In this document: piece by piece, positions 9,126-61,634 of the stretch
Position numbering within the stretch: position 1 is the first letter of the stretch
Layout of the letters: each line of letters begins with the position of its first letter
DNA from: Thalia democratica
Taxonomy: Eukaryota
Length of the DNA stretch: 64,000 bases
Direction of reading: 5' to 3'
Assembly (NCBI GenBank): GCA_965202585.1
Contig: OZ241831.1
Coordinates: 57,164,001 to 57,228,000, forward strand
Notes under the pieces: model-generated
Told to the model about the DNA's origin: nothing
Databases searched by the model: none
Seen by the model: only the letters and a program-made list of their open reading frames with translations
Program-made: the position numbers and the translations under genes

Positions 9126-9392
9126 CACAGTGTTTTCCCGATGAGTTCGCGGGTGCGGGCGGGGAACTGGAGGAAGGGGACACGGGGTGGATCGAGGGGG
9201 CGGCCATCCTTATATCGGTGGTGGTGGTCGTCCTGGTAACGGCCATCAACGACTTCACCAAGGAGAAGCAGTTCAGGGGGCTGCAGAGCAGGATCGACAA
9301 GGAGCACAAGATCAGCATCATCAGGAACGGCAACACCATAGAGATTGCAGTGGCCGATATCGTGGTCGGTGATGTGCTGCAAGTTAAATACG
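9126..9392 (+). CDS. ATP2B: PMCA exon 3 (AQCF...TGWIEGAAIL...NDFTKEKQFRGLQ...VVGDVLQVKYG; M2)
   Basis: Acceptor ccccaacag (9125) fits phase 1; donor G|gtatgt; 267 nt. Confidence 0.93.
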
Positions 9393-11896
9393 GTATGTTG
9401 AGTTGATACTACTGTTTTGTTAAGTTTAGATAAAGTTTTGCTATTAAATATCATTTATATAAGTGGTAAGCTAAATAATTAAGTATGGTATGTTGAGTTT
9501 ATGTTAATATTTTAGAAGTTTCATGTAAGCTTCTATATTAAATAATTGAGATATAAATTTTCGTCAAAAATTCTGCTTATTGAAGTAAAATATAGACAAT
9601 TGATTTAATTATTTTTGATATAAACTTCTTTATTGCTGTATTAAACTAGATCGTTGTGCTGTTTAAAGTTGTGCCCTATGTAGGTTACAAGCTAGTTTTA
9701 AAGTCCCGGGTAGAACATTACTTTTTGGTTGATGTTGCAAGTCAAACATGGTAAGAAGGAATCAAAAGAAACTTAAGGAAAAAAAAGCAATCATCAGCAT
9801 TCAGTTTTATACTTACACATTTTATTTTTATTTTGGATTGCATATATTTTTAATTTTATTATTCAAATAATTAGTGCATCTTACTTTTTTTAAAAACAAT
9901 CAAAAAATGTAACTTTTAAAATTATCTAATTTCACTTAATTCCCCTAGTATTATTTGTTTATGTAGCAAAACTAATAACTTTAAGCTGTATTTGCAAATA
10001 TTTTGTGAATTTTTATTCTTATATTTGCATTTCGTTTTGTTTTAACGTTACACTGATCAGTGATGGTATTGACGCTGGTATTTATTTGTTTTTGCTTTTC
10101 AAGCATTACTTTTGTTTACACTGATTATCTATGCGCACGTATTGTATACCGACGTTTAATATTTTTGTATAAACATCGAATAAAATTTAAAATGATAAAA
10201 AAAAAAATGTTTTGTATTTATGTGTAATTTACTTTGTTTAATTTTCATCTATTTTAACTTTTGTTATGGTATTGCAGTATAAAAGTTTGCTAAACTTTGT
10301 TTAGATCAAGTCATTATTGTTGTACTGAAAGTTATTTTCAATATAATAACTTTTTAATAAATATGATAACTTTTTCTTGGTGTGTTTAATTTTAGATATA
10401 TGTATTCAATTTAAAATCAGCATCATTTAATTAGTGTTACATTCATTGGTTACACTTTTATTTAAAAAATTTGTCTTTTTCAAATTATATTATCTACTCT
10501 TTACTGTTTTCAGTATTTTAACAATAAAAAAAAAATCACTTAACTTTCGCTAGCTTGGGATAATCATAATTTTATAGATTTATTTTAACGCTCTTTTTTT
10601 TTACAATTAAAATCAAAATATGTGTATGCATTAGATAAAACTGATAACTTTTTGTTTAAAAAAATTGTTATAAGTTTTGAAAATGTGTTTATATTTAACC
10701 AAAGTTCACATTAAACTTATAAATCAACATTTAAATTTTTAATTTTATTATTCCCATAGTAAGTGCCTGTCCATTCTAAGCTTGCTTATATTTTTTTTTA
10801 TATAAAAAAGAAAACACTAAATTTAGTTTCCTTCAGATATACAGTTTTCATTTTTATGAATTAATAATTTTAGTTTTTTATTAATACGATGTTTTAAAAA
10901 ATGTATAACTAATTTTTTTTTTTCTGCTCATAAAAGCTGTTGTTTTATATTTGTTAAAATTAAAAATATACCTAATTGGACCAAAACAATTTTTGATTTC
11001 TTTGATACTTTTTACTGATTTTTTCTGTGTTGATCACTTTCAGTATTCTAAACTAAAAGTCTGTATTAAAGATTAGTAATAAAAAAATACAGGTAAAGTT
11101 TATGATGTAATTTGTGTTACAATCTTTTTGCCAATAGTTATATCATGAGTACATCATTTAGATTAAAAGTGATAAAGCTACTAAATTGTTTACATAAACT
11201 TTTATTCATCTATGTTAAGTATAATCCTTGTATTTTGTATCCTTATTAACCCTTGTATCAATTGTTACGTAAAACTAGTTAATAACATTTTAATTCAATT
11301 AATAAAGAATATATACAACGTAAAAAAATACTTAAAATGCTAAACTTTTTTGCTTTTAAATAATTTAATTATTTTTTTTGCTTATAACTTCCTTAACCCC
11401 TTTTAGATATATTACACTCTGCCAATAGATATACTCATAAGTTTTTTTGAGATAATAAAATTGTCTATTTCCAAAGGATTTTATGATATCATAAAAGTTT
11501 ATTTGTTAAAAGTTATTTTGTTATATCAAACTTTTTTTTTCTTGATATATTATTAATAGTGATTGTACTTGTTTGCACACTTAAATGATAGTTTTCATAT
11601 TTGAATACTATTATTTTACATGTTCACTTTTCTGGTTTACTTGTCACAATGTTTGTAGTACATGTTAGTTATGCTGGGAAGTGAAACAATTGTATATTGT
11701 TATGACGAAACAGACTATTTCATCAGGATGGCGTCGCAAATTATTACCTCAGCGTTTACTTTTTGTTGGACGTATAACTCTGTTTTTGTTCAAGTTTTAT
11801 TACCACATTTGTATTAAGATATTAATACAACTACTACTCAATATTGTTAGTAACAGACTTATATACGAATTTTATACTATTATGACGTAACAACAG

Positions 11897-12022
11897 GTGA
11901 CTTGCTTCCCGCTGACGGAGTTTTGATTCAGAGCAACGATCTTAAAGTGGACGAGTCCTCGCTCACCGGAGAGTCCGATCTCGTCAAGAAGGATCAGGAC
12001 AGAGACGTTTTCCTGCTCTCAG
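11897..12022 (+). CDS. ATP2B: PMCA exon 4 ([28 protein letters not shown]; A domain TGES)
   Basis: caacag / G|gtatgt, 126 nt; missed by the ORF track. Confidence 0.96.
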
Positions 12023-14717
12023 GTATGTATAAGTTTTTAATAAAGTTGAGAATTTTCCATGACAGCACAATGTAATTTGTTACTATGTGTTACATAAACT
12101 AAGGTTTTACAAAGTTATTTAATCTATTTACTATTTTAAGCTTTTAATAGAAGTAAAAAAAAGACGTTATTTTAAAAGTAGAAGTCTAGCATTAGGTTAA
12201 GTTTAATTCTAATAAAAGTGTAAGAGGTTAAGAGGATAAGAATGACAATGGTAGTTATTATTTATTCTTATTGTATAACCAAGCAATGTGTGCGCTATTT
12301 TAGACAGTTATATATATTTCTTTTTTAATGTATACTATAAAGATAAAGTAGTGAAATTATAAATATATCTTTGAAATCAAATTCAAAGTTACGCGAAACA
12401 CTTAATGCCAAGTATTTTTTGTTGGCTAGACTTGCGTAAAAACCCTACCACAAAATATTTCATGCTGAATTTAATTTGAATTCTTTAAATAAATTCTGCA
12501 AATTTACCAAGTTCGCACCAAAAGATAAGTGGAATCAAATTAATTAATATTTAATGAATGAAACCAAAGCAACGAGTTAATCACATTGATTATTTTCTAT
12601 ATAAAGCAACACACTTCCTATCTCTTTCTGTATGAGATTATTATTAACATTTTAGATCTCTTTGTAATGAATCTGCAATTCAATCAGATTTTTATCTTGA
12701 CAAGAAGTGTCATGATATTTTGGTAGCAATCTAAAAATATATTTTAGATGCGATTTTGAATAATATAAAGAAGCATTATATTATGCTTCCTTCTAGTTAT
12801 CTCAGTGCTAATATTTAATTGTATGTGCCAATTGAAATTTAAAGCCTCGTAATAAATGACGATTAAAAAGACAGCACAAATGAATAAAAATTTACAGCAA
12901 CTGATGCAAGACAAATTAGTCAAATTTGAAGTTCATCCTTGTGCCAGCACTTGTAACATACGTGCAATTCTTATTATTTAAATAAAAAAACAAAATGCAA
13001 AAAAGTTGTAATCAAGCGAAAGTGATTGCAGTAATTAACAAACACTCGAATATCAAACACACATATACATGTTGTCTTTTCAGCGTGGCGCTGAGTCGAT
13101 TAATTATTCATAACTTTCGCTCTGCTAGCTCTCTGCACCACACGCTTTCAATACTCGCTCTCTTGCTGCAGTGAGCTTCATTAGCATTTTTATATTGTTT
13201 GTGATTAAGTGCGTTTTCGTGTAAGTTTTCATGGCAACACATTGTCGTATCCAGGTTTGATGGAAAAGTTTGGTTGTAATAACTGCTTGATCCTTACTTT
13301 TTTTTTGCCTGTCAGTATATTGTTCATAGAAAATGTCGATTTTGAGTAAAAAGTTTAAAAGTTTAATAACTTTTTATTTAGCAAGCTTTAAAATAACTAA
13401 AGTAAATAACAAGTTTTAAGTTTTGAAGTTTCTGTGATGATCAACTAAAGTTTTGTTAAACTAAGTAAAACTAGTCACTTTTTATCTGGTTAGTAATGAT
13501 AAAACTGTTACTAATTGTGTTTTTTATTGTTCTGAAGACACAGGGTAATGCACAGAGTGAATTTATTCGTTGTATGTAACACAAGAACCTCGAATTATAG
13601 TTTAATCAAAACGTAATAAGGTTTATTTTATTCTTTTCAATTCAAATTAAGATCTGCTGTTGGAAATAAAATATTCAACCGGTTAAGAAAATACACAGTA
13701 ACTAAACTATAAAATAAATTAGTATTTCAGTTTAATTTTTTAATTTTTATTTTGCACGCATAACGCAACGTTTTATATATATGAGAAAGTAGCAAGTCAT
13801 GTGTGTATTAAGTGCGTAATCACTATTTCAACATGTTTAAAAAAATTATGTTTAGCATGATTCAAGTAACAGAATGCGTATATGATTTTTTTAAACTGCT
13901 CTCCTATAAATAAATCATTTTATGTTTAAGTAATTTGACTTGTTGGCTTAATACAATGTTTCCAAACTCATTTTCATACTTACCCCCTAAACAAAAACAA
14001 AATCCTCCTTAATCAGATACTACCCTTTTTCTAGTTTATTACCTATTTACTTTTTCATCTCTTTATTAACTATCGCCCCAAGGGAAACTCTGGTATAACA
14101 GTATAACAGTTAGTCCACTACAGTACAAATAACTTCTCTGTCTATCACAGTGTTAAATATGTATTTGTTATAGTGATCAATAAAAATTAAATCCTACTTG
14201 TATTACAACTGTAATTTTTCTTAAAAAAGACAGAACCTTTGTAGTGTAGATATGTTGCATATAATATCAAAGAAGAATAAACAAATTGCATTATTGCTCA
14301 TAAATATTTAATATATACGTATTGGTACCCGCTAAATGCAAGGCAGTAAGTGATAAATGTGTAACAACTTTACATTTACATATATATAAACCTTTTTATT
14401 AATAAAGCCCTTAAGGTGGGCTCAGTGTGAAAGATTTGATTTATCAAGTAAAATAACTAAAATTTATATATAATTAGTCCCAAGCAAAAGCTTATTTTGT
14501 GTATTTTAGTTCTATATATAAAATTTTATATGTATGTTTACAAAAGGACTCATGTTGTGGAGGATAAATGTGTATTAACTTAACATTTACATATTTATTA
14601 TATTGACACAGGTACTCATGTTATGGAGGGTAGATTTGTAATAATTTTGTATTTTTTTTGTACTTATTTGTAGATTTGTAGTAACTTTTTACTTATACAT
14701 ATATTATATTGACACAG

Positions 14718-14816
14718 GTACTCATGTTATGGAAGGTAGCGGTAGATGTGTGGTCACTGCTGTTGGTGTCCATTCACAAACTGGTATCATTCTATCACTT
14801 CTCGGTGCTGCTGGAG
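14718..14816 (+). CDS. ATP2B: PMCA exon 5 ([33 protein letters not shown])
   Basis: gacacag / G|gtatgg, 99 nt, phase 1-1. Confidence 0.95.
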
Positions 14817-17067
14817 GTATGGCTTTAATTTCATTGAGAAAACATGTTTTGTGTAACTTGATGTGTTTTGACTTTTTGCAGTGATATTTGCTCAAAAAAA
14901 AAACTTAACTGTATTTGTTGTGTCGGTTAGAATTGTGATAAAAAAACTGTACAAAAAAAACATTTCAATTTTTATTCAGTGTAATATTTTCCTTCTTTTA
15001 TTTCATATTGTATGGTAAATTAATTAGAACTTGCAGTATGCCCTCTTGATTGAAAAGCAATAAAATTTTAACTGTGCACGTAAATTAAAAAGTATAATAA
15101 AACTTTATTAACCAAGCTTATTTGCATATATCTGCATAAAGGCAGATACTAATGTATTCATAAAACATATTTCTGTTTTTGTGTTGTACAAAAAAAAATT
15201 GTGAATACTTTAACTAAGATTTAACCTGCAATGAGAACTTCAATTTCAAATAGAAAGTGTGAGGTAAAGTTTAAAACTAAACGTTTCCAAAAGTCATTTA
15301 AAAATCTTTTAAAGATTTAGTATAAGATGTTTTTTGATAAAACTAAAACAAAAGTGTAAGCTCTTACTCGATCATACAGCTTTACAACAAATCAGTTGAA
15401 AAAGGTTTTAAGTCATGAAACTACATGGATACTATCATGTACCTGGTTAATCCAAACACGAATTTTAACAAGTAACAACAAAGTTCACTGCAAAATACAA
15501 ACGCAGATTTGAAAAATTATAATGAAGGTTGCCTTTTGTAAAAAATGTGGTTGAAACATTCATAGCTTTGCGGTTAAATTTTGTGTGATTTATGAGATAA
15601 AAAACCAAATGAGAATATGAATAAGTCCATTTTTGGCATTTGTAGAAGAATGCTGCAATATTTTGTTAAGCTGCATAAGTTTGTAAAAAAAAAATTATTC
15701 AAGGTAAAAGCCCCAGTAAAATTTTCAGTCCAGAGCTGTCTAAAAAGTGTTGTTGAAATTTTGTTACGTTTATATAAAGTAAAATTTAACATAAAGTATG
15801 AGAATGCTTAAACTTTTTATAAGCTGCTACCTGTTTTTTGTTTTGCTAATTAAAAAATTACTAGTTTAACATAAAGATAAGTGTTTAAAAAAATTTGTGA
15901 AGGTTAAATGAAGCTAAAAAAATAAAGTAGAAATCTTCTTAGAACATGTTACAATAGAAAAATAATTCATACTTTGTATAATGCTACATGAAGTATTAAA
16001 TTCCACAAACCATTAATTATGACGTCACAACACAATGGTTTCTAACATTTGCAATTAAATGCACTAAAACTAGGTGTGTGGAGCAAAGTTCTCCAAAGTA
16101 TAATCTTGAACTTTTCTAAATTGTCATATTCTGATTTTTTACGCGTTTGGTTTTCATACTTAATTTACTTTTCTGATAAAATTTAAACTTCCTGGAAATT
16201 GTCCAAAATTCTAATAAGTTTATAGTGTATAAAGTCAATTGCTAGTGCAATAGTATAAACCAAGTATAAACTTTCTTTAATCGAGGTTAATTGTACTGTT
16301 TAGTCTGCATATGAAAGTTATTAAAGTTGAACTTTTTATTTAAACTATCATAGTGTTGTGATAATTGTTAATCTCAAATAATTAATAGATAATTTTTGAT
16401 AGAAGACAAATTAAAATTTTCTCGTATTTCACACTGTCGAAAAAGTTTCCACATATTTGAATAATGAGATTAGTTTCTGGTGTTGTTATGAATGAGTGTT
16501 TTTCAAGATTATATTTACGTACTCACTTTGGAATTCTCAGTATTTAAACAACACTGCTTTGTTATAATCTAATGTTTAAGACATATAAAACATTGTGTTG
16601 TGTAAAATACTGTTTAAATTGTATGTTTTGTGTCTTATTTATGGAAGTTTTTTATATGTTTTGTATGCTTTAAGGTTTTTATATTACAAAGTTCTATATA
16701 TTTAAAAAAAATTGTTTTAAAAGTATGCCTTCATGTTATCTATATGTAAAAGCTTTTATCTTTTTTATTTATTTTTTTCAGATTTTCTATTTAAAATATA
16801 AAAAAAAACTCTTATTGGTTAATATTTCAGTTTGTCAAAAGTTAATGAATTATTTTTCATATACTTTGTTAAAATTATTTACTTTGTGCACAGTTTTTAC
16901 TTAGCTGCCAAAAATCAATATTGTATTTTTCAATTGACTCTACGTTTAGTTATTAAAAAAATTATTTTAATAAAATAAAGATAACGGTAAGAGCATTCAA
17001 AACACTCTATTTGATTTTGTCAACCTGCGTGTACTTCTAATGTTTAAATATTATTTTTTCTCAACAG

Positions 17068-17241
17068 AGGACGAAACCAACCAAGCGGAACCGAGCGAGA
17101 CGGGCTCGTTGCTAGGTAACGACGAGGAAGCGGGGGGCGAGGGAAACAAGTCCGGTGAAAAGAAGAAGTCGTCCAGCAGGAAGGAGAAATCCGTGTTGCA
17201 GGCCAAATTGTCGAAACTCGCGGTTCAGATCGGTTATTTCG
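17068..17241 (+). CDS. ATP2B: PMCA exon 6 (site A loop: EDETNQAEPSETGSLL...KEKSVLQAKLSKLAVQIGYF)
   Basis: ctcaacag / G|gtcagt, 174 nt; KEKSVLQxKL motif. Confidence 0.94.
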
Positions 17242-17596
17242 GTCAGTTTCACAATTTTCAAGATAAAATATTCATTGATTTTTTTTTGTTTGATGATAAA
17301 AGCTGTTTGAAATTTATTGTATTTATCAGTATGAAACTTGTATTCTCTTAAAGTGATAGTGTTTGAAAAATCTTATCTTGAAAGAAATCCTAAAACCTTA
17401 GTTTGTCTGCTTTTTTTGTATGGTTTTTAATGTAAGCTTAAAATAAATTTTGGATACGGTTTTTTATTGTTATATAAAAGATCCCAATTACAAGAACAAA
17501 AAAACACAGTTTAAAAGATTAGTGGTAAGTTATTATGAACAAAGTTTTTATACTAAAATTTAAAGTTTTTATTACCTGGTTTTATTATCATTTTCC

Positions 17597-18260
17597 ACAG
17601 GATTCGTGTTATAACTAGTAACAGTCCTCACCATTATATTCTTCCATGACTGATAAAATAACGTAATTTCCTGATAAGCTGTAGTTTATCCTAATATTAC
17701 AACAACAACTTCAGGATTCGTGGTACCCCTTGTAACAGTGCTCATCCTTATTACGCTTTTAATAATAACAACAAAATACTAATTTAATATTTTGTTGCTG
17801 ATAACAATAGTAATACCAATAAATAAAAGCACATCATAGATACCAACAGGATGCGTTGTATCATTAGTAACCTAATGAGGTTTCACAATTTTGTTTGAAG
17901 ATAGATAAAAGTTGGTTAAAATTTATTATTTTTATCAGTAATTGATGATTTTATCAGTAAATCATTAGTAACCTAACCAAAAACATAATGAGGTACCCTA
18001 ACTTTATATAACAACAACACTTTCAAACAGGGTTCATGAAAAAAGATAAAAACAATTTTTCAGAAATTACCTTGAATTTCAAGGTTACTTTATTTTTATA
18101 CAACAAAACTTCAGGATTCGTGGTATCACTGGTAACACCGCTCATCCTTTTTTAGTATTAATTAATGACAACGGATTAAATATTTTATATTTTGTTGCTA
18201 ACATAAACAAATTATCAATTTCAAACAGGATTCGTGGTATCACTGGTGACGGTGCTCATT
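17597..18260 (+). repeat. Array of degenerate copies of the exon 7 acceptor and exon start
   Basis: cag|GATTCGTG-like at 17601, 17715, 17850, 18031, 18115 and live 18229. Confidence 0.88.
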
Positions 18261-18443
18261 CTGATCATCATCTTCTGCGTGGAGGTGTTCGGCACTGGGG
18301 GCATGTCGTGGAAGAGCGAGTGCACGTCCGTGTACGTCCAGTACTTCGTCAAGTTCTTCATCATCGGCATCACCGTGCTCGTCGTCGCCGTCCCCGAGGG
18401 GCTTCCCCTCGCCGTCACCATCTCCCTCGCCTTCTCCGTCAAG
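18229..18443 (+). CDS. ATP2B: PMCA exon 7 (M3-M4, [20 protein letters not shown])
   Basis: tcaaacag / AAG|gttcgt, 215 nt, phase 1-0. Confidence 0.96.
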
Positions 18444-21400: not shown

Positions 21401-22446
21401 TATTCATTATATCGCGTGATTCTCATTTTGTTATTTTTTTTTTCGTGTTTAATGTTGACACATATACGACTTGGTCTTTAGAATTTTCGTAATTCTGCTA
21501 TTCGTGTCCCAGTTTTCACAGCTTGGTCGTTTCTTCCAAGCCTGATCTGCGTGTATCAAAAGTGGTTTAAGTTTATAACAATTGAATTTTGTGACGTAAT
21601 AGGATGTGCGTTGTTACAGGATGTAATGCCTGGTAGTTCCCATATCTGATAATTCCGATAACTGTTTCTAATAAAACTGCATCTATTAGTTTTATTCGTT
21701 GTAATAACCATTGTTTTTAACATGTTTTCCTTCAGAACTGTCTCATTTTGTTTTGTTTTTCTTTTACTGTTAATTTTTAACCTGTACAAATTAAAAGCTT
21801 GAATCTTGTGATAACACATTTTATTTTATATTTGTTGAATATTTATGATTCTAAAGTGTTGACGTCATTAGCTATCATGAGTAGTTTTTATTTTAGTGCA
21901 AAGTCACAATGTCCTGAGAAACGTATGGTTTTTGAAAAAATTTCTAATTATTTTAGCGAAAATATTTAACTTGCTTAGTTTTCGTTTTTCAACATCACAA
22001 CAGTCTAACGTCACCAATTTAAACCTTGTGATTTTTTGAATAAATTAACATACAAGCTTCAGTAAAACCAAAAATGATAGATACTTTATTGGACACTTTT
22101 ATTTCTTTGTCTTCAAATATGTTATTTGATCATGAGATCCTTTGATGTAGATGGTTATTGACAATATAATTTAAATACAACGCGTATCTTAGTAAGTGTA
22201 ATTGAGTTCATTAGAGAACAGTAAAAATCCGAGCTTTTTGCGTTTGAAACTTTTATTTTGAAAATACATATTAGCAGTTGTATCACCAACAGCGTTTTCA
22301 AAATCCAGTGTGCAACCTTCTGTTTACAGATTCAAGTAAAAAAACACTGTCTTTTATTATTTATGGTTGTGCTACTGTTTTGTATGTCATAATTATTTTT
22401 TAATGCTACTAACTTGTAATTATATACATGTATAATTAATACATGA

Positions 22447-22593
<147 letters not shown>

Positions 22594-23039: not shown

Positions 23040-23042
<3 letters not shown>

Positions 23043-47935: not shown

Positions 47936-48399
47936 ACCTGTATTTTTTCAAAAAAAGTATAACTTATTTATAAAAATTGTACTGTGTAACTAAATGTATG
48001 TAAATATATAAGTAAAAAAGTATTTTATTTCTGCAAAACATCTTATACTTTAAATCTATTTTCAATTGAATAATATAAAAAAAATATAACTAAAGTTTTA
48101 AAACGAAATTTGATGACCTAGACTTAATAAGTTTATGTTATAAATTATATTGTGTATAATCTATCTATTATATTTATGTTTGATGAAAACAGTGTGAAAT
48201 ATACCTGAATTTTAACTAAATAATAAAAATGATGATCAAAAAATAAATTTATGCGGTTTTTAACACAACTTCAAAAGCCACCAAACCAAACAAAATGACC
48301 TAACTAAAGTTAACTGTCAATAAAAGAGTGTCATTAATAAATTATTGACGGTCATTATAAATGCAAGGGGTTCAAAGGATTAAGTGCTTTTTAATGGGA

Positions 48400-48501
48400 A
48401 AGTCTTTATTGTTTTAAATAAATTCAAATGAGCAAATCTTTATTGTTTAAATGAATTCAAATGAACAAGTCTTTGTTGTTTTTAATAAATTTTCAAAGAA
48501 C
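48400..48501. repeat. Tandem repeat, about 34-bp unit x3 (aagtctttattgttttaaataaattcaaatgagc)
   Basis: Three diverged adjacent units. Confidence 0.8.
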
Positions 48502-49326: not shown

Positions 49327-49540
49327 GACAGTCCACTGAAAGCGGTCCAGATGTTGTGGGTGAACCTGATCATGGACACCTTCGCCTCCCTCGCCCTGGC
49401 AACCGAGCAGCCCACCGAGGAGCTGTTGCTAAGGAAACCGTACGGGAGGAACAAGGCGTTGATAAGCAGGACCATGGCCAAGAACATACTGGGTCACGCT
49501 GTGTACCAACTGATTGTCATATTCGTCCTTCTGTTTGCTG
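49327..49540 (+). CDS. ATP2B: PMCA exon 16 ([27 protein letters not shown]; M6-M7)
   Basis: ctcaacag / G|gtttgt, 214 nt. Confidence 0.96.
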
Positions 49541-52500: not shown

Positions 52501-54205
52501 GTTTATTGATTTTACCGTGGCATTTGCGTCGCTACGGTTTCATATGAAGTTTTATGAATACTGGAGAAAACGTGAAACAACGTTACTTTGTGTTAGAAGG
52601 TACGTTGCAACGCTGTAAACATCTGGGAATTTGCAAGAATCTAATCTTCCGAATCATCAGAAAAAGCTAATATCAAAGAATATAAAAAAGTACTTTTGGA
52701 TGTGTAATTGAAGCAGAAATGTAAAAACTGTTTTAATTACGAATGTAGTTTTACTGAAGTGAGGAAAAATCTTACAAATTAAAGTTAAAGAAGTCAATCT
52801 TTTTCAACATAAATTTTTCTTGTTCAAAAAAATTTGACCAGGCTACGTTTTTGTGCGTCGTACCGAATTGTCCTGCATAAAAGAAAGAAAAGCCCAAATT
52901 TGTTTGTTTCGTCATTTCAATTTATGACGTCACAGCAGCGTACGCAAAAGCTGGTGCTTTGTGACGTCATAATTCGACGCATCCTTGGGATCGGCTTTTT
53001 TCAAAGTTCAAACGGAAATTTTCTGTATCGTAAACAAGCACACAAATGTTAAGTCTCACTGTGAATGCCACTTTTTGTTTTCTTATTTACTAAAAAATTA
53101 GCGCGTGAAAGTTCAATGTTAAAAGCTTAAATAGCTGTGAATCGGCTGTTTGGTGGCCAGACACCTGATTACAAATATAAACGTCATTCAAGATGTAACC
53201 TACAAAAACGATTGATGATGATCAAAATTTGAATGCAGAAAACCACTTGATATTTTTTATTTGCAGCCCTTTCTATGATTTTTTTGCAGGAAAGATAAGT
53301 ATTTGATGCTTTCAACATTTTGTAGTGATTCAGGACGCATGGTTATAACCGAATTTTCAATTGAAACAATAAAACTGAGATAAATATATTTTTTACATAA
53401 AACAACAGGAAAATGTGTTCGAGAATTTTTATGCGTTGCGCCATGCAATAATCTCATCAATGTTTTTACGTTGCATTGATTTTCCGACTACACTGCGTAT
53501 GAAGCAAAACACAAAAAGTTACTTTATTCAGCCTTTTTTGAAATAAAAAACGAATTTCTTTTGATGTTTTTACTGAGGCCAGTAATGTTTTTAAAAGTAA
53601 GTGAAATTGTTATGTAAGTTTCGTTTAAATATACTCTCAACTCATTCGCTTGTGTTGGTTTGTAGTTGATCGTTGAACAGAATTAAACTACGAATTTTAT
53701 TCGAATTTTGATAAAAACAAATAAAAACCAATTTTGCCGTCAGTAACTTTTCAGCTATTTTTGTTTTTGAGGTTATTTTTAATGCGAACCTGCGCAGCAC
53801 AGTAGGATGTTGTTCATTTTTAGTAACATTTCTTCTAAAAATACTTTTAATGCCATTAAAAATCGAATTAACGACGGTGAATGCGCATGTTCAGAATAAA
53901 ACAGTTCCATTCTAAATGCCAATCGTTGAATCGCCTAATTTTATTTAAATAACAAAAATAATTTTTTGGCAGCTTTTTTTTAAGTTGCAATTAAAGTTAA
54001 ACAATTTATTTTTTTTGTACTGTTTATAGTCATTAACTTGTACTCGGTTTTTAACTTTGGGCTTCTGTTAAAAAAGTAACAAAAAACCTGCTGCTTATAT
54101 TTTTAGCCATGTAAATATTTTAAACCAAACAAATGAATTTTTTCTTATTTTTTATCATTTATTTAACCTAACATCTGCACTTAATTACTGAGTGTCAGTG
54201 CGTAT

Positions 54206-54450
54206 ATTCTTGAATGATTGTTAAATATATTCTTGAATAATTATAAAATTTATTCTTTTATAATTATAAAATGTATTTTTGAATATTTATAAAATAAATT
54301 CTTGAATAATTATGAAATATATTTTTGAATAATTATAAAATGTATTCTTGAATAATTATAAGATGTATTCTTAGATAATTATAAAATGTATTCTTGAATA
54401 ACTATAAAATGTATTCTTGGGTAATTGTAAAATGTATTCTTGGATAATTA
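54206..54450. repeat. Minisatellite, 23-bp unit TATTCTTGAATAATTATAAAATG, about 10-11 copies
   Basis: Periodicity read directly. Confidence 0.9.
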
Positions 54451-55860
54451 TCTCCTCTCAAAGCGCGTCATCAAGCCGCAGTTGATCAAATTCTGCCCGC
54501 GAATAATTGCACAAGTATCGATCCATTTTTATTGCCCTCTCTGTGTTTCAGCGTTCCAATTTTTCTCGAACACGCAAATTAATTTTTAATTGGATTCTGT
54601 GCTGCAATTTTTTTTCATGTCCAAGAAAATTTGCATGGACTTGATTAACTGGAAGTCTTGCAAAATTTGATGTAATACTTCTAGTTGAAATTAATTTGCT
54701 AAGAAGTTGTCTTTGCATTTTGTTGAATTAAACAATTGTTTTATGAACTCATTCGAGATAATTTCGTTCGAGCTATTTTTCCATTTGTTTGTAAAAAAGA
54801 TAAAAGTTATAATAAAATTGTATAAATAAAATTTAAATCACTGACTGAAACCCTTTAATTTTAGTTTAGGAAACATTTTTTGACCAAGACAAAATTTAAT
54901 CTGTTACACACTATTTAGTCTTTCTAGCTTATATTTTCTTGGAAATTTTTCTTTAAAGTGAGAAAGTTTTTCATACATTAGAAACTTTTATGAGCTTTAA
55001 CAAAAGTATTAAGTAGCTTTGAATAAAAAATAATTCCAAGACACATGCGCATAATTTACGTCATCATATTTGTTATAAACATAACAGAATATTGAGCCTA
55101 GTTTAAAAAATACTTACCTTTCAACAATATAGATGGATATAGATGTTAAGTTGAGCGATTATAGTTTAGCAAATTATTTTAAAAAGTTAGAAGTAATTTT
55201 TGATAACTAATATATTGAGAAATTGTTTGATATAGACAACGTTAAAACTCTAAATTTGTAAATTTGGTTTAAATCATCAATTGGTGAAAAGTTAACTGAT
55301 ATAGTTTTAGCTTATAACACGATTTTACTTTAGGACATATTTTATGTGTTGTATACAGGCTTGCCTTTCTAACTCATAGTAATTTAAGTTCTGAGCAATT
55401 TTATAATTGATTGAATTTCAAAACATTTTTACAATTGTGAACAATTTGTATATACATATATATATATGATATTAAAGCTATGAAGCAAAACATAATTTAC
55501 CAACACTTAAGGTTTTACCGGTTCTAATTATGTTATAAAACAAAATATGTTTGATCAAGTAAATTATGTTTAAACAACTATACATATTTATATACAAGAT
55601 TAATTATTCAAGATTTTTATTTGCAAAACTAAGTTTCACCCTTTAAGGGATATTCAGTTACAATTTAAATCTTATTCAAATAGGCCAAATTGTAACTGAT
55701 CATTCTTTAAAAGGTCAAACTCAGTTTTGCAAGTAAAAATCTTGAATAACTTATCTTGTATATTTGTCCTCTTATTTTTAAATAGTTAGAGAACTGTTTT
55801 TGTTAAATTTAGAACCTCAAATATAAGTCTACACATATTTATATCTTCAACAAAATACAG

Positions 55861-56072
55861 GTGAGAAGCTGTTCGATATAGACAACGGCAGGGGGCTTAC
55901 CCTTCACGCCGCCCCCACCCAGCACTTCACCATCATCTTCAACACGTTCGTCATGATGCAGATATTCAACGAGATCAACGCCAGGAAGATACACGGCGAG
56001 AGGGACGTTTTCGGCGGCATCTGGACCAACCCCGTCTTCTGCTCCATACTGGTCGGAACTTTCGTTGCTCAG
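55861..56072 (+). CDS. ATP2B: PMCA exon 17 ([10 protein letters not shown]...[25 protein letters not shown]; M8-M9)
   Basis: aatacag / CAG|gtataa, 212 nt. Confidence 0.96.
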
Positions 56073-56149
56073 GTATAACATATATATATTAGTATATATT
56101 TTTCTTTTAAATTATTAGTTTGTAAACTTTTTTTTTTCATAACTATATT

Positions 56150-56535
56150 CAGGGTTTCCACTTTACCTGGAAACTTGGAATTTGAAAGTTTAGGCAAAAA
56201 AAAAACCTGGAAAGATGAGAAATTTTGAAATAAAAACTGGAATTTTGAACAAAATTTGCTAAAAAACCTGGAGAAACCTGGAATTAGAAACAGTTTTTAC
56301 ATGTAAAGTAGAAAAATTTTGATTTGACACAAAAAAATCTATCATATAGATTAAAAAATTTTGTTATCATCAAATTTTATTCTATTAAAAAACACATATA
56401 AAGTATCTTTTAAATGTTTTTATACTATTTAACACAGTCTTTTACCTTAAAATTAACTTTAAACTAAAAATAGACCCAAAAACATGTACTTTCAAAAACC
56501 TGGAAGAGAATTATCAAAAAAGATTGGCAACCCTG
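56150..56535 (+). mobile_element. MITE family A copy 3 (CAGGGTTTCCA...TGGCAACCCTG), intron 17
   Basis: TIRs; shared internal gacacaaaaaa(a)tctatcat and aaactaaaaatagacccaaaaa; fills about 60% of a 640-nt intron. Confidence 0.8.
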
Positions 56536-56712
56536 GTGAGTTTCACCGGATTTCAAAAAGTTGGGTTTCTTCTTAGGTCATTAAAAGTTGTTGGAAGTTT
56601 TAAAATAAAACTTTCATTTTTGAAAATCTTAGTACAACTCTATATTTGTTCTCCACACAGGATAAAACCTGAATGTTTTAAAGTCTTAACTCTATATTTG
56701 TTCTCCACACAG

Positions 56713-56862
56713 GTGCTGATAGTGCAGTTCGGAGGAGTTGCTTTCACCACAACCCCGTTGACTTTATCGCAGTGGCTGTGGTGCATTTTCCTCGGCATGA
56801 TGGAATTGCTGTGGGGTCAGCTCGTTTCATCCATCCCCAACTCTGTCGTTCCCAAGAACCTT
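56713..56862 (+). CDS. ATP2B: PMCA exon 18 (VLIVQFGG...QWLWCIFLGMMELLWGQLVSSIPNSVVPKNL; M10)
   Basis: cacacag acceptor; donor CTT|gttagt chosen for phase 0 compatibility; 3' end slightly less certain. Confidence 0.88.
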
Positions 56863-57398
56863 GTTAGTGGCAATTTTATTAAACTTAAATTGGTTTCGAC
56901 ATTTAAAAAGTTAAACAAAATAATTTTTATTATAAAAACAATTCAACTGTGTCTTGGACCGATTTCGGAAATATTTTTTTTTACGTTTACCTGCATCAAC
57001 TTATTAAGTTTTGTTAACTAAGGTATTTGTAAAAGTGTCATACAAATTTAAACTTAGTAGCCGAATTCATTGTTCCAAAAACCTTCCACCGATTAAGTTT
57101 ATTTTTAGTCGTTTTAAGTGTTTTTATATTTTTTAGTAAGTTTTAAACTATTGAGTGCAGTACACTAAGATTAAAATAATAAATTTGTACAAGTGTCGAA
57201 CAAGGTTGAGCGTAATTCCCAAACAAGATTCCACCACGTCCGTTGTAAGTTACCGAAAGTTGTTTTTACTTCATTGCTAATGTCAAACGGAGGCTTCAAA
57301 ATTTACCCTGCGTATTAGATAGCTTTTTCTGTTTTTTGTTTTGATAGTTTTATTGAGTATTGCAAATTTTTTTTTTATAAACTCAATTGTATCAATAC

Positions 57399-57665
57399 AT
57401 CTTGTATTCTGTCAACAAAGCAAAAAGTAAAATTTTTTACCTAAAAAAAGTTTTCATTGTAATGCAAACAAATAAACTTAAGACTTACTTATAATAGGGA
57501 TGTAATTTAAAAGTAAAATAATCAACAGTTTATATCTTGTATTCTGTCAACAAAGCAAAAAGTAAAATTTTTAATCTAAATGAAGATTTTATTGATGCAA
57601 AAAACGAACTTAAGACTTACTCATGATGGGAATGTAAAAAATATTTAAAATTTCGTCAACAGTTC
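57399..57665 (+). repeat. Tandem duplication, about 135-bp unit x2, second unit ending at the exon 19 acceptor
   Basis: atcttgtattctgtcaacaaagcaaaaagtaaaatttt begins both units; both end in tcaacagtt. Confidence 0.88.
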
Positions 57666-57794
57666 AAGAAGAAGAAAGACGACTCGTCATCGTCGGACGA
57701 CGGCCTCAACGAGCCGGCTCACGACTTCACGGAGGACTCCATCAGGAGGGGACAGATTCTGTGGTTCCGCGGCCTCAACAGGATACAGCAGCAG
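57663..57794 (+). CDS. ATP2B: PMCA exon 19 (FKKKKDDS...IRRGQILWFRGLNRIQQQ; first half of CaM-binding domain)
   Basis: gtcaacag / CAG|gtatgg, 132 nt. Confidence 0.94.
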
Positions 57795-59694
57795 GTATGG
57801 CGTCATAATTGTCGTGTTGTTGTGGAAGTTTTGCGTCAACTGGTGTGAGGCTACCATGTTACAAGAAATCTTATTTTCAACTCTATGCTATCTATGAAAA
57901 TTCAAAAAAAAAATTTTTTTTTTGTTTTTTAAGTTTAGGTAGTGTAACTAAATAACTTCTTTTTATTTTATTTAGCTTCTTTTATTTAGCCTTCCACCAG
58001 TTGATGCGTTGTTTTAAAATAAAATATAAATTTTAAACAAAGTCGCTTCTAGTTACGTCATAGTTTCGTGACGTCATCAAAAAATTGAATTTTGATGACA
58101 AGTCTGTGAGAAAATCAGCCTTTGTAGATTCTCCTATCTTTTGTAAAACTTCTTATAGTCTGTCCTCTTCGAACGTTTTGTCCTTAGATCATGTGTACAG
58201 CTTAGCTTTACTTTGTTAAATTTATTTGTTAAGAGTATTTCTTTTTAATTTTTTATATAAATGTTTTATATATAAAGAAAAACTTTAAAAAAATGAACAT
58301 AAAAAATAGTTTAAATAAATATTCTCTTTTATTTTAATTACAAACTAAAATTGAATATATTTCTAGTTTAGTTTTAGTGTGTAAGTCTTTATAAAATTTA
58401 AGCAAAAATAAATGATAGCTGGTTTTAATACTATTTTCGTTTGAAAATTTGTAAAAACTAGCTAGTTTCAACTAAAACATTTTTATATAAACGCGCTAAC
58501 TCTAAACAAAAAAATGATAATTCTAAACATCTAAGTAAAATTTTGTATACATTCATTAAAACAAACGTCATTTAGTTTATTTTATTTTTTTTTTGTGTCA
58601 ATAATAATTTTTCTGTAAAACATTTTTTTTGACAAAAAGTTTACAAATCTAATTACAAACAGTAGCATTTCCGACAGGGCCGTCTAAAATTAAGATAAAA
58701 TTACAAGATTAAAAGAATAGAGATTTGCCCGTCATATATCAAATTGCGTCATTCACCCACTAATCAGACAGGATTAGACACTCACGAAATTCTATATTTG
58801 CAAGTTTTTCAACATTGATATCAAAATACCTCAGTATTAGAATAACTTCTCAGTTGACTAGTCTAATTTTAGTATTGTTTTAAAACTTTTCAAACTGTTA
58901 AAAAAGTTTAAGATTAAAATTTAAAAGTTGTAATCTTATTTAAAGTGCGCACATTTGTTTTATTCAACTCTGTTTGTTCAAAAAAATTGAGTTTTACTTA
59001 AACTGTCCTACAGTTTGTTTAGTTAATTTTTTTTTTCATAATCAATCAACTATGTGTTTGACAAAAGCTTTTCAGATTTACTTTAAATATGATCAATTTT
59101 GAAAAGTTTTTAAATATTTATAAAGGTGAACTTTACTAAGGTTGCAATTGCATATAGCCGAAATACAGTTTATTTGAATAACTTGTGTAAGACAACCAAG
59201 GAAGATTTTGTTGTTATATTAATTATTCCTCTACTAAAAAAGCTTTATAATTGCAATTTCGCGGAAATTGTTTGTTTTAGTTTAAACTTCTTTGTTCTCA
59301 GAGTTCAATGAACTTTTTAATGTTTGACAAGATGTTGAGAATAAGTTTATAATTTTAATATGTAGTAATTAACATATTTATAGTTTTTAAAGTTTTTAAA
59401 ATTTTATTTTCTTTTATAAACAGTTTACCAACCAGACAAGTGTTAGAGTGCTTTATACAGTTGAGCAATGATGTAATAATATTCAGTCAGTATATATCTT
59501 AATGATTAATATTTTGTCTTTAAAAACATTTTATACTTTATTGAAAAGTATTGGCTAAATATTGCTATTGTGATGGAATTTCTTTTCAATTTTACATATC
59601 TGATTTTTTTCGCATTACTTTATCTATCACTCTTTTACACTTACATTCATCTTTTCTGTTCTCCTACTTCTTATTATTTTCTTACTTGCAACAG

Positions 59695-59766
59695 ATAAAT
59701 GTAGTGGAAGCTTTCAAGCACACGTCTGAAATCAGATCCGGAACTTTGAAGAAGAACACCTCAGAT
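59695..59766 (+). CDS. ATP2B: Candidate alternative splice-site-C exon (INVVEAFKHTSEIRSGTLKKNTSD)
   Basis: Long pyrimidine tract then caacag; phase 0; resembles the second half of the CaM domain (IRVVNAF) and vertebrate site-C exons; donor GAT|gtaata. Confidence 0.72.
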
Positions 59767-61511
59767 GTAATATATTTCTATCTGTTTGTTGTTTTGCCTG
59801 GGTGTCTCTATGTGTCTCATGTGTGTGTCATTTTTATTGTCATTTCGGAATCTGATTAGAAACAAATTTTTTTGGTTCTAGTTTTGTCAATTGACACTTT
59901 TTCTTAGGGTTGTAAACTTTTTTTCCATTGCTGAAAATTTGGGGTGGTCACAGGCTTAAATGTATGTTGCAAAGGGAACTTTTTAGACCATGTAACTAAA
60001 TAAATACTTGAAGCAATTTGCTTTATAAAAATAATCAACAAAAGTAAAGTCAGTTTTGACTACGTTGCTTAGATATAAAAGATTAAAGACAAAAATGATT
60101 ACAATAAATAAACTGAAAGTATGTTAGTGTTTATTTATAAAAAATAAATACTATGTTAAAGAGTCAATTCCACAATACTCAAAAATTTGAAAACTGGTTT
60201 TTGTTCAGATTCCTCCTTTCATGTTATCTTTCTTGTAGCTCGTTTGTTCAAAGTACTAACCGCATCTTTGTGTTTGATTTATCAACAAACTAACAAATTG
60301 TGTGTTTCATATTAATAACTTCCTTCTAAATTTAATGCTAACATGTAGTTTAGGCTATGAATTATAAATAAAATGGTAGGTTTATTTTAATCAATTTAAT
60401 TTTCTTTTTTATTACGTGTTTTTATATGACTTGTTGTTGTTTTTTAAAGCAAGCTAAGTTTGCTTATACTCAAACTTGATGTATAAAATTTCTTTATTGT
60501 AAGATGGTATTAAAAGTGCATAACAGTGTATTAGTATTTAAAATATTACACTGTGAATATTTTAACTTTTTCTTCGAAGCTTGAGGAATTTTTCACTTAG
60601 GGTTTCAAAGAGAAGTTAGAAAATAGTAAGAAGTTTATACATAGATTTCATACCATAATAGTCAAATAAGTTAAGTTTTATTAATAACAATTTGTTCTAT
60701 TTTACTATGTGTGTTCTTTACAAAATTTTTTTTTTTTACTCTTAAAATTCTGTTATGAGTTTTTATCATTTCTTGTTCTTTATAGTTTACTTTATAATGG
60801 GTTAAAAAAATTCTAATTAACAGTTTTTAAATGAAATAAAAATAATATATTTTTAAAGTCTATTTGTTGTGTGTTTTGATTTTACTCTGATGGCTTTTTA
60901 GTTCTCTTATAAATTTCCTAGCTTTATATTTCAGCAAGTGGTGCTTAGAGTTCAACTGTTGATGTTTTATATTTTTAATAAAAAATTGTTGTGATGCTTT
61001 TCGAGTCTACTTTCTCTCCTACTTTCAATAAGAGTTTCTTTCAATACACTTTTAAATTTTGTGTTACTGCTTTTTAGATAGAATTTTTCACAACCTGAAA
61101 TGTTACACTGTTTCTTTGTACTTTTAGCACTTTTTAAGTTTTAAAACTTTTCTTCAACTGTTTTCATGTGAGGATTGTTCGTTTTTCTTGTGACTTGACT
61201 TTTCGAATTGTCATGATTCTAAATAATTCACTTTGAGTTTGCTTTTTCATACCTTTTAACACTCTCTGTGCTTGAAACTTGAGTTTTACAACTATCAATT
61301 ACTTTTTAGTGAAACTTCAAAGGTATCACACTACAATTGGTTGCAAACTCATTATTTTTTTTAACTTTCTTTATATTATATTTATTTTTCCTCTGAAGAC
61401 TTTACTGCCAGAGATTTTTACAACTTGTTCAATATTTTCGCCAAGCTTGTTTTCATTCACACAGCTTTCTATTCATCCTTATAATTTCTTCTCTTAGTTG
61501 TCTCCCCGTAG

Positions 61512-61634
61512 GTTTCGCACCACAACTGGTTGCAACTCCAGCAATTAATAACACCAGACGTAACACCGCAGCCATCTCCACAAGGAAGTCCTCAACACGT
61601 CAGAAAATTCAAAAACCTCCGACAGCAATCTTGA
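61512..61634 (+). CDS. ATP2B: Candidate alternative terminal exon (VSHHNWLQLQQLITPDVTPQPSPQGSPQHVRKFKNLRQQS*)
   Basis: Acceptor tctccccgtag; locally C-rich island; open in phase 0 to TGA 61632-61634; has its own upstream echo at 61321-61345. Confidence 0.62.
   Translation, partial: VSHHNWLQLQQLITPDVTPQPSPQGSPQHVRKFKNLRQQS

Follow-up and report, generated by a model that had tools for sequence, protein, structure and literature searches.

Partial copies of splice junctions beside the exons of a plasma-membrane Ca2+-ATPase gene in Thalia democratica

The window analysed here is a 64,000-nt stretch of the Thalia democratica genome (assembly GCA_965202585.1, contig OZ241831.1, nt 57,164,001 – 57,228,000) and carries a gene for a plasma-membrane Ca2+-ATPase (PMCA). 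The gene was modelled by tblastn with the full-length PMCA P0144 in combination with GT/AG frame rules, giving 20 exons (E1 – E20) and an intact frame of 1140 codons (CDS of 3423 nt), in which the single stop is terminal. The exons are GC-rich while the introns have ~23% G+C (~77% A+T). Two joints of the model, E12|E13 and E13|E14, are borne out by RNA contigs, as a metatranscriptome contig joins 39040 to 41177 at GT..AG and runs on from 41356 into the start of E14.

6430..62571, + strand, PMCA coding region (tblastn with P0144, GT/AG frame rules)
6430-6625, 8620-8817, 9126-9392, 11897-12022, 14718-14816, + strand, exons E1-E5
17068-17241, 18229-18443, 22474-22561, 25501-25658, 30225-30359, + strand, exons E6-E10
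32698-32804, 38806-39040, 41177-41356, 43616-43810, 46062-46253, + strand, exons E11-E15
49327-49540, 55861-56072, 56713-56862, 57663-57794, 62422-62571, + strand, exons E16-E20

A sequence-only reading of this region had claimed that most exons are flanked by degenerate partial copies of their own splice junctions (here called echoes), with a strict polarity. In the current study, which covers this one gene, a probe of 40 nt of intron and 60 nt of exon was taken from each junction and compared with ±1500 nt on both strands by composition-weighted local alignment. In a related test with 50-nt probes, the 99.95th percentile of matches at distances above 4 kb was 30.6 bits, close to the threshold of 30 bits used here. 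Thirty same-strand echoes of the claimed polarity were recovered, at 16 of the 38 junctions and 12 of the 20 exons, which is what the claimed 'most exons' amounts to. Each echo-bearing junction has from one to five copies, all decaying and all on the same strand of the adjacent intron. Acceptor copies lie without exception upstream (two each at E5, E9 and E10, five at E7, four at E12, and one each at E13, E15, E16, E17 and E18), and donor copies downstream (one each at E3, E8 and E15, two each at E12 and E13, three at E7). The strict polarity is upheld, since no intronic copy of wrong polarity or on the reverse strand was found by these probes; the four matches of those kinds are all weak, GC-rich alignments of exon against exon (63-68% identity). 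The same test gave no echo at 22 junctions, including all those of E1, E2, E4, E6, E14, E19 and E20, and the candidate at E11 fell below threshold. None of 17 exon-interior probes had a nearby copy. The echoes are listed below with their distance from the real junction, their span about it and their identity; the positions given in the sequence-only reading agree with the probe matches to within a few nt.

9463..9521, + strand, E3 donor echo, 95 nt downstream, -24..+35, 72%, GT kept
14527..14566, + strand, E5 acceptor echo, 172 nt upstream, -18..+21, 78%, AG lost (now AA)
14572..14633, + strand, E5 acceptor echo, 106 nt upstream, -40..+22, 85%
17584..17630, + strand, E7 acceptor echo, 628 nt upstream, -18..+30, 81%
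17712..17751, + strand, E7 acceptor echo, 514 nt upstream, -3..+37, 82%
17843..17871, + strand, E7 acceptor echo, 379 nt upstream, -7..+22, 79%
18018..18038, + strand, short E7 acceptor echo, 198 nt upstream, -13..+8, 18/21 identical
18112..18148, + strand, E7 acceptor echo, 114 nt upstream, -3..+34, 86%
18634..18687, + strand, E7 donor echo, 201 nt downstream, -11..+39 (homology to ~+52), 78%, GT kept
18796..18831, + strand, E7 donor echo, 382 nt downstream, -30..+6, 89%
18957..18985, + strand, E7 donor echo, 528 nt downstream, -15..+14, 79%, GT lost
22747..22786, + strand, E8 donor echo, 213 nt downstream, -28..+12, 85%
25169..25211, + strand, E9 acceptor echo, 307 nt upstream, -21..+18, 79%
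25349..25380, + strand, near E9 acceptor echo, 144 nt upstream, -8..+24, 88%, island
30029..30053, + strand, E10 acceptor echo, 186 nt upstream, -10..+15, 84%
30092..30130, + strand, E10 acceptor echo, 109 nt upstream, 72%, AG lost
38089..38118, + strand, E12 acceptor echo, 711 nt upstream, -6..+24, 87%
38260..38283, + strand, E12 acceptor echo, 540 nt upstream, -6..+18, 83%
38442..38474, + strand, E12 acceptor echo, 358 nt upstream, -6..+27, 88%, in an independent metagenome contig (X4 record 17)
38659..38684, + strand, E12 acceptor echo, 138 nt upstream, -9..+17, 92%
38736..38755, + strand, weak fifth E12 acceptor echo, 26 bits, below threshold
39223..39256, + strand, E12 donor echo, 214 nt downstream, -32..+2, 82%, GT kept
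39413..39454, + strand, E12 donor echo, 397 nt downstream, -27..+17, 73%
41020..41042, + strand, E13 acceptor echo, 153 nt upstream, -4..+19, 91%
41422..41478, + strand, E13 donor echo, 93 nt downstream, -28..+32, 70%, in an independent metagenome contig (X4 record 24)
41535..41585, + strand, E13 donor echo, 184 nt downstream, -6..+37, 78%
41596..41638, + strand, third E13 donor echo, copy of the first echo's region (41404-41446), offset 192 nt
45904..45949, + strand, E15 acceptor echo, 138 nt upstream, -20..+25, 87%, island
46392..46417, + strand, E15 donor echo, 146 nt downstream, -8..+18, 25/26 identical
49120..49136, + strand, short E16 acceptor echo, 205 nt upstream, -2..+15, 16/17 identical
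55216..55241, + strand, copy of the E17 start, 645 nt upstream, +2..+27, 23/26, no recognisable AG
56636..56661, + strand, E18 acceptor echo, 52 nt upstream, -25..+1, 26/26 identical
61321..61350, + strand, echo of a putative alternative exon start (~61510), 40.6 bits

Several of the individual copies claimed earlier fared differently. Those at 32541 (E11, 20 bits), 29784 (E10, 24 bits) and ~57528 (E19, 20 bits) are not distinguishable from chance, the strong repeat near E19 being an intron-only tandem duplication of 135 nt (57396-57637), and the one at 49271 (E16) shares ~9 nt with the junction by eye. Four of five claimed E12 acceptor copies and two of three E13 donor copies exceed the threshold; the fifth and third, respectively, are plausible in context, the latter scoring 28 bits with the exon but 43 bits with the echo next to it. 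For the putative alternative exon, the claimed echo was recovered (partner at 61510-61538).

Scans made without reference to the annotation give the same picture. With composition-weighted scoring there were 39 local direct-repeat pairs versus none in two block-shuffles, and by our own count ~28 of them touch a junction. Uniform scoring (at least 31 matches in 40, copies 30-600 nt apart) returned 23 direct pairs versus none in three shuffles; 16 of these involve a junction or a junction echo, while junctions ±40 nt make up ~5% of the gene. Local inverted pairs at this threshold numbered only two, both intronic. Of the controls proposed in the sequence-only reading, the shuffles were empty of pairs and the reverse-strand comparison of the junction probes was empty of intronic copies, and the exon-edge echoes are confirmed as real and far above chance. 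Copies are at least ten times denser at junctions than in intron interiors, and, as had been proposed, they add sequence to introns beside exon edges. No published description of such echoes at comparable density was found. All echoes reach 37 nt or less into the exon, though the exons are 88-267 nt long (chance under uniform breakpoints ~2.5e-11, a rough figure). In 200 kb of repeat-rich flanking DNA, ~150 islands of high GC content had only 0-2 edge echoes among them (Fisher P = 6e-9), so a GC/AT boundary is insufficient by itself to generate them, although these islands may simply be younger.

The sequence-only reading explained the echoes as tandem duplications, arising for example through imprecise recombination of divergent haplotypes whose homology is confined to the exon. 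Taken as a full model, this gives contiguous ladders of serial units, made by unequal or imprecise exchange, with older units pushed outward. Some true tandem or block units, with flank homology of 68-81%, are indeed present. The two E5 echoes abut (unit ~62-67 nt); at E7 the block 17707-17799, containing the echo at 17712..17751, is homologous to 18107-18199 (78%); at E13 the block 41535-41649, begun by the echo at 41535..41585, re-duplicates 41351-41459 (79%); and 25042-25110, before the outer E9 echo, duplicates genuine intron sequence upstream of E9 at 25385-25448. The re-duplicated blocks seen in some arrays are ~110-230 nt long with offsets of 184-400 nt. The E10 echo at 30092..30130 is a copy of that at 30029 plus its tail (offset 77 nt), and smaller recurrences accompany the E7 echo 17843..17871 (tail at 17961-17976, 16/16), the E12 echo 38659..38684 (upstream flank 38613-38637 at 38756-38780) and the E15 donor echo (spacer part 46348-46385 at 46518-46555).

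Many echoes, however, are short islands of 23-62 nt set off by unrelated single-copy spacers, which one contiguous ladder does not explain. For about half of the echoes closest to their exons, the sequence that tandem duplication predicts to match the spacer is unrelated to it, beside cores 82-100% identical, and Tandem Repeats Finder reported none of the echo arrays. At the E15 acceptor, E8 donor, E12 donor and near E9 echoes (cores 82-92%) the spacers match nothing predicted, that of the E15 acceptor being 92 nt of single-copy sequence without flank homology and that of E8 unrelated to its flanks, and 26 unrelated nt lie between the E18 echo and the real site. For the E13 acceptor echo, a flank homologue (40456-40498) is displaced by a repeat insertion (40592-40955). 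Tandem steps alone could not have yielded the order of elements at E9 (copied intron, echo 2, a unique and unrelated 137 nt, echo 1, intron, exon), and identity is not graded with distance (78, 89 and 79% at the E7 donors; 92, 88, 83 and 87% at the E12 acceptors). Copies of one and the same junction extend to different depths into the exon. At the E7 donor, exon bases -30..-12 are present in the echo at 18796 but missing from the nearer one, so the former cannot stem from the latter and records an independent event; repeated events at one junction, as claimed, are thereby supported. The intron alleles are very divergent (~7-13% including gaps), but they are still alignable, and exchange between them predicts alignable spacers, which are not seen. 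Tandem duplication thus accounts for some units but not for the arrays, and the ladder explanation as a whole appears unlikely. Instead of an insertional origin, conservation of the cores or gene conversion acting on them might also account for their high identity (85-100%) next to flanks that do not align.

The differences between echoes and exons fit neutral decay, with mismatch rates of 16.5% where the copied sequence is exonic and 14.7% where it is intronic. The three codon positions have mismatch rates of 12%, 7.7% and 29.8%, respectively. There are 53 synonymous and 43 non-synonymous differences, which fits the synonymous fraction of 0.49-0.51 predicted for free drift of the echo and purely silent change in the real exon (P = 0.14-0.24). 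Of 29 echoes, 26 still have their AG or GT, versus ~21 expected from mean divergence (P = 0.016), which hints at some constraint, or at ascertainment. This retention, the preserved cores next to unalignable flanks, a junction excess that does not obviously follow from mutation alone and the AT-richness of the introns would suit a second explanation, in which selection in a species of very large population size maintains the echoes as decoy or helper splice sites. They might, for instance, attract U2AF, SR proteins or U1 to the vicinity of exons that are weakly marked, or serve as U1 sites acting against premature polyadenylation. Such a function is also doubtful, as exon-derived mismatch is no lower than that of the intron-derived core, the excess of silent change is fully accounted for without selection on the echo, AG or GT has been lost in several copies, and length, position and number vary freely among junctions, most of which have none. 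Evidence of use was not found in metatranscriptome contigs.

The echoes are probably best explained as germline relics of recurrent, independent, short-range same-strand duplications that end just inside exons and have been filtered by selection. The copied segment, usually ~25-70 nt and sometimes up to ~170 nt, ends 1-37 nt inside the exon in every case and crosses the splice site into the intron, and its copy would be placed within the intron, at 50-700 nt from the real junction. The copy might abut its template (a true tandem duplication) or have pre-existing intron between (an insertional or templated duplication), and blocks already containing echoes are later re-duplicated to give arrays of two to five copies. 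The exon and the real splice site are left intact, as the sequence-only reading had also held, so the products are tolerated; the copies would stay out of the mRNA and decay neutrally. The polarity had been taken as the mark of a special process, but geometry suffices: any junction-spanning duplication leaves its partial copy intron-side, and any other product is either lethal or not an echo. Geometry and selection likewise explain the lack of exon-interior copies, and the shallow reach follows because deeper, whole-exon or in-exon duplications would damage the message. They do not explain the at least tenfold junction excess, which we tentatively ascribe to mutation being biased towards exon edges, as might happen if repair synthesis or resection halted at a GC-rich, probably nucleosome-bound exon; preferential retention is an alternative. 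No echo was seen to be present in some alleles and missing from others, so none of the events could be viewed with its breakpoints fresh. The molecular mechanism, like the cause of the junction bias, is inferred.

Long target-site duplications, in which the spacers would be mobile elements or filler DNA inserted at exon edges in the manner of introner elements, are much less likely. The layout of matched cores around an unrelated spacer, as at E18, resembles such duplications, and the genome is rich in high-copy repeats, one of which adjoins the E13 echo. Against this, a search of the 802-Mb genome with three spacers (E15 acceptor, E8 donor, E13 acceptor) and with the 137 nt preceding the near E9 echo showed each to be single-copy, no significant foldback structure was seen in ten spacers or segments of spacers, and no array or spacer overlaps dispersed-repeat matches, either within the window or to fetched loci. 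The exon-adjacent spacer at E9 is old intron with its own upstream copy, and so not a new insert. Tandem exon duplication is common in animal genes, and echoes might be worn remnants of whole duplicated exons (formerly mutually exclusive); this is highly improbable, as the exon-interior probes found nothing nearby, no echo has more than 37 exon nt or both splice sites, and random decay would have left pieces of wrong polarity.

Artefacts of assembly or polishing, or chance similarity in low-complexity DNA, might be suspected in introns so AT-rich and repetitive, and X1 may be the sample behind the assembly, but this explanation is already contradicted, since shuffles yield no pairs, the echoes are diverged copies and not exact collapses, and those at 38440-38576 and 41425-41500 are covered by DNA contigs from X1, from another sample (X3) and from an independent marine metagenome of 2016 (X4). 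The relics of duplication are absent from the mRNA contigs of the metatranscriptome, and RNA depth was zero over all echo bins. Frequent local duplication at exon edges would lengthen introns and plant silent decoy splice sites. A precedent for the silence of the PMCA echoes is known from intron 7 of human F7, where identical 5' pseudo-sites downstream of the authentic site are silent via 5'-to-3' scanning (PMC1557585).

The window (27% G+C) carries one large gene on the + strand, coding for a plasma-membrane Ca2+-ATPase (PMCA). Its 20 coding exons (E1–E20) were mapped by tblastn with P0144, a full-length PMCA protein, the splice sites being picked by GT/AG and reading frame. Residues 11–1150 of P0144 are matched in order across the gene, and this collinearity includes two sequence motifs of 16 and 15 residues. 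The spliced product is 3423 nt in length (1140 aa), with an intact frame and a single terminal stop. Its G+C content at the three codon positions is 0.52, 0.38 and 0.76, and that of the introns is about 22–25%. In place of a pyrimidine tract, the acceptors have in common an extended motif rich in A, its usual form being AACAG/G (the slash marking the splice position), and 14 of the 19 donors read GTnnGT. The sequence of the window is also present in public runs assigned to three organism codes, in a marine metagenome of 2016 and in the metatranscriptome of the latter, from which it follows that the animal is marine and abundant.

Decayed partial copies of exon edges, each with its splice site, lie in the adjoining introns and are here called echoes. 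When all 38 junctions were used as probes, with a threshold taken from matches more than 4 kb away, 30 echoes, or about 0.8 per junction, exceeded it, all on the same strand, with every acceptor echo upstream and every donor echo downstream of its junction. Just four matches had another polarity or strand, and these were weak, GC-rich and exon-to-exon. Exon-interior probes had a nearby copy in 0 of 17 cases. Composition-weighted scanning of diagonals, for which no annotation was used, detected 39 pairs of local direct repeats, the majority located at junctions, and uniform scoring gave 23, of which 16 involve a junction or its echo (junction neighbourhoods occupy about 5% of the gene); neither scan returned a pair from shuffled sequence. 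Only two local inverted repeats were found at the threshold of the uniform scan. At E7, inspection by eye and a repeat search show five upstream copies of CAG plus the first 8–37 nt of the exon, and three downstream copies of its last 11–30 nt plus GT.

The existence of exon-edge echoes in this gene, first proposed in a sequence-only reading, is thereby confirmed; none of the wrong polarity or strand is intronic. The accompanying statement that most exons are flanked by such copies amounts to 12 of 20 exons and 16 of 38 junctions. Some individual copies could not be upheld: those assigned to E11 at 32541, E10 at 29784 and E19 at about 57528 are not above chance, and the E16 copy at 49271 has only about 9 nt in common by eye. 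The strong repeat near 57528 is purely intronic: about 135 nt are duplicated in tandem there (57396–57505 and 57531–57637, 85% identity). It ends 26 nt before the E19 acceptor, and the junction is not part of it.

That the echoes are an artefact of assembly is ruled out by contigs carrying them in two public DNA runs (X1, X3) and in the independent 2016 metagenome (X4). Contigs of X1 match the E12 array with 0–3 differences, and contigs of X3 (another sample) and X4 (records 17 and 24) span the echoes at 38440–38576 and 41425–41500. No alternate haplotype or paralog of the arrays was found in the 802-Mb assembly with 37900–39500 as query; only the first 67 nt of that query (37900–37966) are a dispersed repeat, and the genome has no second copy of the arrays. 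Across 37800–41800 the assembly and the contigs from other haplotypes or individuals diverge by approximately 7–13% in introns (substitutions and gaps) and 3–6% in exons; the species is highly polymorphic.

In the E12–E14 region one metatranscriptome contig joins 39040 to 41177 across GT..AG, and a second RNA contig runs from 41356 into the first bases of E14 (43616). RNA depth is zero in every echo-holding bin of this region, where the authentic sites are used and the echo sites are not detectably used. A strong donor-like motif, GAG/GTAAGT, lies inside E12 at 38944–38962; RNA contigs read through it, and run contigs differ from the assembly at places within it.

Echo cores are 17–62 nt long, 70–100% identical to the real junction and located 52–711 nt from it. 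They extend 1–37 nt into the exon (median 22) and 0–40 or more nt into the intron; as the exons measure 88–267 nt, the chance of a 37-nt maximum under uniform breakpoints is roughly 2.5e-11. The junction position is spanned by 28 of the 30 above-threshold echoes (the E17 copy does not span it). The splice dinucleotide, AG or GT, survives in 26 of 29 echoes; counted by type, 17 of 20 acceptor echoes have kept AG and 9 of 10 donor echoes GT. Mismatch in the two parts of the cores is similar, at 16.5% where they derive from exon and 14.7% where they derive from intron. Within the exon-derived parts it reaches 29.8% at third codon positions, against 12% and 7.7% at the other two, and the differences comprise 53 silent and 43 replacing changes. 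Given free drift of the echo, a real exon restricted to silent changes, and AT-biased mutation, a decay model expects a silent fraction of 0.49–0.51; the observed value, 0.55, agrees with it (P = 0.14–0.24), so selection on echo peptides need not be invoked.

The duplications seen in the sequence-only reading do occur at exon edges, but its simple contiguous tandem model is not borne out. Tandem Repeats Finder, applied to the whole window, reported none of the echo arrays, which are therefore not ordinary tandem repeats, and when each spacer was aligned with the partner that the model predicts, the model failed for about half of the echoes. Homology extends over 9–65% of the distance from one copy to the next, and many of the spacers have no relation to it, leaving the echo as an island. 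Core identity is 82–100% for the E15 acceptor, the E8 and E12 donors, the near E9 echo, E18 and the 114-nt step at E7, yet in each of these the spacer matches neither tandem-predicted flank; at E18 a perfect 26-nt repeat surrounds 26 unrelated nt. Intron-only duplications in the same gene retain 68–85% identity over 40–80% of the unit, so that any flank homology once present at the echoes should have shown. The arrays are thus not one contiguous ladder.

True tandem or block duplication is nevertheless present in some of them. The two E5 echoes abut, 17707–17799 matches 18107–18199 at E7, and 41351–41459 matches 41535–41649 at E13. The spacer of the E13 acceptor echo has its partner at 40456–40498, displaced by a repeat insertion. 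Elsewhere, at E9, a copied piece of intron is followed by echo 2, by 137 unique nt, by echo 1 and then by the original intron and the exon, an order that cannot be had without one or more insertional copies placed away from their template. Exon bases that are absent from the first donor echo of E7 are present in the second, and exon reach varies among copies at one junction, from which it follows that the events were independent and recurrent. Recombination between divergent haplotypes, suggested earlier as an example of a cause, finds no support. Small-scale duplication is active in the PMCA introns, as seen in young tandem arrays at 54205–54451 (23-nt unit, 10.7 copies), 48403–48491 (33-nt unit, 2.6 copies) and 22633–22690 (perfect 26-nt unit, 2.2 copies), the last lying within the spacer of the E8 donor echo.

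Strict polarity is seen at all 30 echoes. Geometry and purifying selection explain it, as they explain why viable products lie on the same strand, why exon interiors are not copied and why the copies reach so little way into exons; polarity is a consequence of these rather than a clue. The island structure and the 37-nt maximum of exon reach are new constraints on any mechanism. Geometry and selection do not explain why local copies are at least ten times as frequent at junctions as in intron interiors, and detection bias can contribute at most about twofold, constraint acting on one member of every junction pair. A scan that yields 10 edge echoes in the gene yields 0–2 at about 150 GC-rich islands in 200 kb of repeat DNA next to the window; the boundary between GC-rich and AT-rich sequence is therefore insufficient by itself, although these islands may be young. 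The flanks are gene-poor in the ten 10-kb pieces sampled over about 200 kb on each side. Arrays of ~3.1-kb units that include tRNA-like SINE sequences occur in these pieces, as do further GC-rich repeat islands, but a search for GC3-rich exons found none.

The excess leads us to infer that mutation is anchored at exon edges or else that the copies are preferentially retained. A coherent candidate for the first is repair synthesis primed in the intron and heading toward the exon, which would halt just inside the exon, its product being re-joined at the break; such repair is predicted to give direct copies of correct polarity, with short exon reach and spacers of original intron. It is conceivable, though on balance doubtful, that exon-edge-anchored duplication (a candidate being repair synthesis or resection halted just inside the GC-rich exon) seeds junction copies genome-wide, a main route for the growth of these AT-rich introns that would also keep supplying decoy or new splice sites, or alternatively that the copies are kept as an aid to exon recognition.

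Polymerase-theta end joining and the 'patch-mediated' tandem duplications of plants produce short same-strand copies from within a few hundred nt. The copies are tens of nt in length, and original sequence sometimes separates them from the template; error-prone break repair of this kind is expected to yield inverted copies as well. The PMCA echoes differ in being direct only and in ending within 37 nt of the splice junction, and no anchoring of these processes at exon edges is known. In layout the island echoes (near E9, E15, E18, E8) fit templated insertion, a candidate mechanism; only direct copies are seen.

Recursive splice sites (ratchet points) of long introns are conserved and have AG directly followed by a 5' splice consensus. 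Echoes resemble them in being intronic and in having a 3' splice site motif, but they carry exon sequence, and GT follows AG only where the exon itself begins with GT or a near variant (E5, E9, E12, E13). The echoes do not belong to this class: those of E7 (CAG/GATTCG), E15 (CAG/GGAA) and E10 have no GT, and those of E12 (CAG/GTGCAC) are without the +5 G usual at donors of the gene. An introner-like mobile element with target-site duplication could place a spacer between two copies. However, a whole-genome search showed that three spacers are ordinary single-copy sequence, as are the 137 nt preceding the near echo of E9, ten spacers or spacer segments folded as DNA gave no significant hairpins, and no dispersed-repeat match overlaps any echo array. 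Tandemly duplicated or mutually exclusive exons are dismissed, as the copies have an exon part of at most 37 nt and one splice site only, with no copies of exon interiors; an mRNA or cDNA origin is dismissed because, at E6/E7, the sequence before the acceptor echoes has by eye no match to the end of the preceding exon. A dispersed repeat family with CCTGGAAA-type motifs occurs at 1494–1926, 40592–40955 and 56146–56535 and is extremely abundant, its contig word depth reaching about 1e5–3e5 in three DNA runs; the copy at 40592–40955 separates the E13 acceptor echo from the displaced partner of the spacer of that echo.

In the literature no account was found of exon-edge echoes at many junctions of a gene or genome, and only a single-locus case was met with. 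This nearest described case is the minisatellite of human F7 intron 7, a 37-bp VNTR whose first unit spans the exon 7/intron 7 boundary and whose identical downstream 5' pseudo-sites remain silent (PMC1557585). In both genes a junction-spanning repeat puts copies of the exon end and 5' splice site downstream, where they are silent; in the PMCA gene the copied units likewise contain exon edge plus splice site, and silence of the pseudo-sites was seen at E12 and E13. F7 is one locus with perfect head-to-tail units, whereas the PMCA gene has echoes at 16 junctions, of acceptors as well as donors, which are diverged, often have unrelated spacers and stem from independent events. Contiguous head-to-tail units homologous over their whole length are not what is seen here, although a few sub-blocks do act as tandem units.

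Intron gain by tandem duplication is related in logic to the echoes. In intron gain or sliding of this type (Rogers' AGGT model; for example PMC3265369, PMC4974935, PMC2891723), local duplication likewise provides an additional splice site, and coding capacity is kept because splicing discards the redundant copy with the intron. Such cases make a new intron in a former exon, whereas here existing introns are extended and no new exon-intron structure shows in the mRNA.

Intron growth and the origin of new splice sites and exons are usually inferred from rare single cases. This one gene offers about thirty separate junction copies at varied stages of decay, and the pattern would be of real interest for intron evolution if it holds genome-wide. 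It would then be a natural experiment for the rate, size and breakpoints of junction-spanning duplications, and would reveal whether exon edges are singled out by some feature of repair or chromatin and how the splicing machinery ignores dozens of intact-looking decoys. For annotation there is a practical risk, as echoes with intact AG or GT can lead gene predictors to false alternative exons.

A metagenome scan with the E12 peptide returned only distant PMCAs, none of which exceeds 55% identity when the exon peptide is compared in full. The metagenome PMCA loci of other organisms, a rough negative control, are mostly without such repeat pairs. One of them (L049, contig Ga0209367_1005797, G+C 0.40, from a different organism) does bear, 206 nt downstream of one exon, a clear donor echo:

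9166–9203 and 9372–9409: donor echo of L049, in which the exon that encodes ...ADVGFAM has its final ~27 nt and its GT repeated

Exon-edge echoes are thus not confined to the genome of Thalia democratica.
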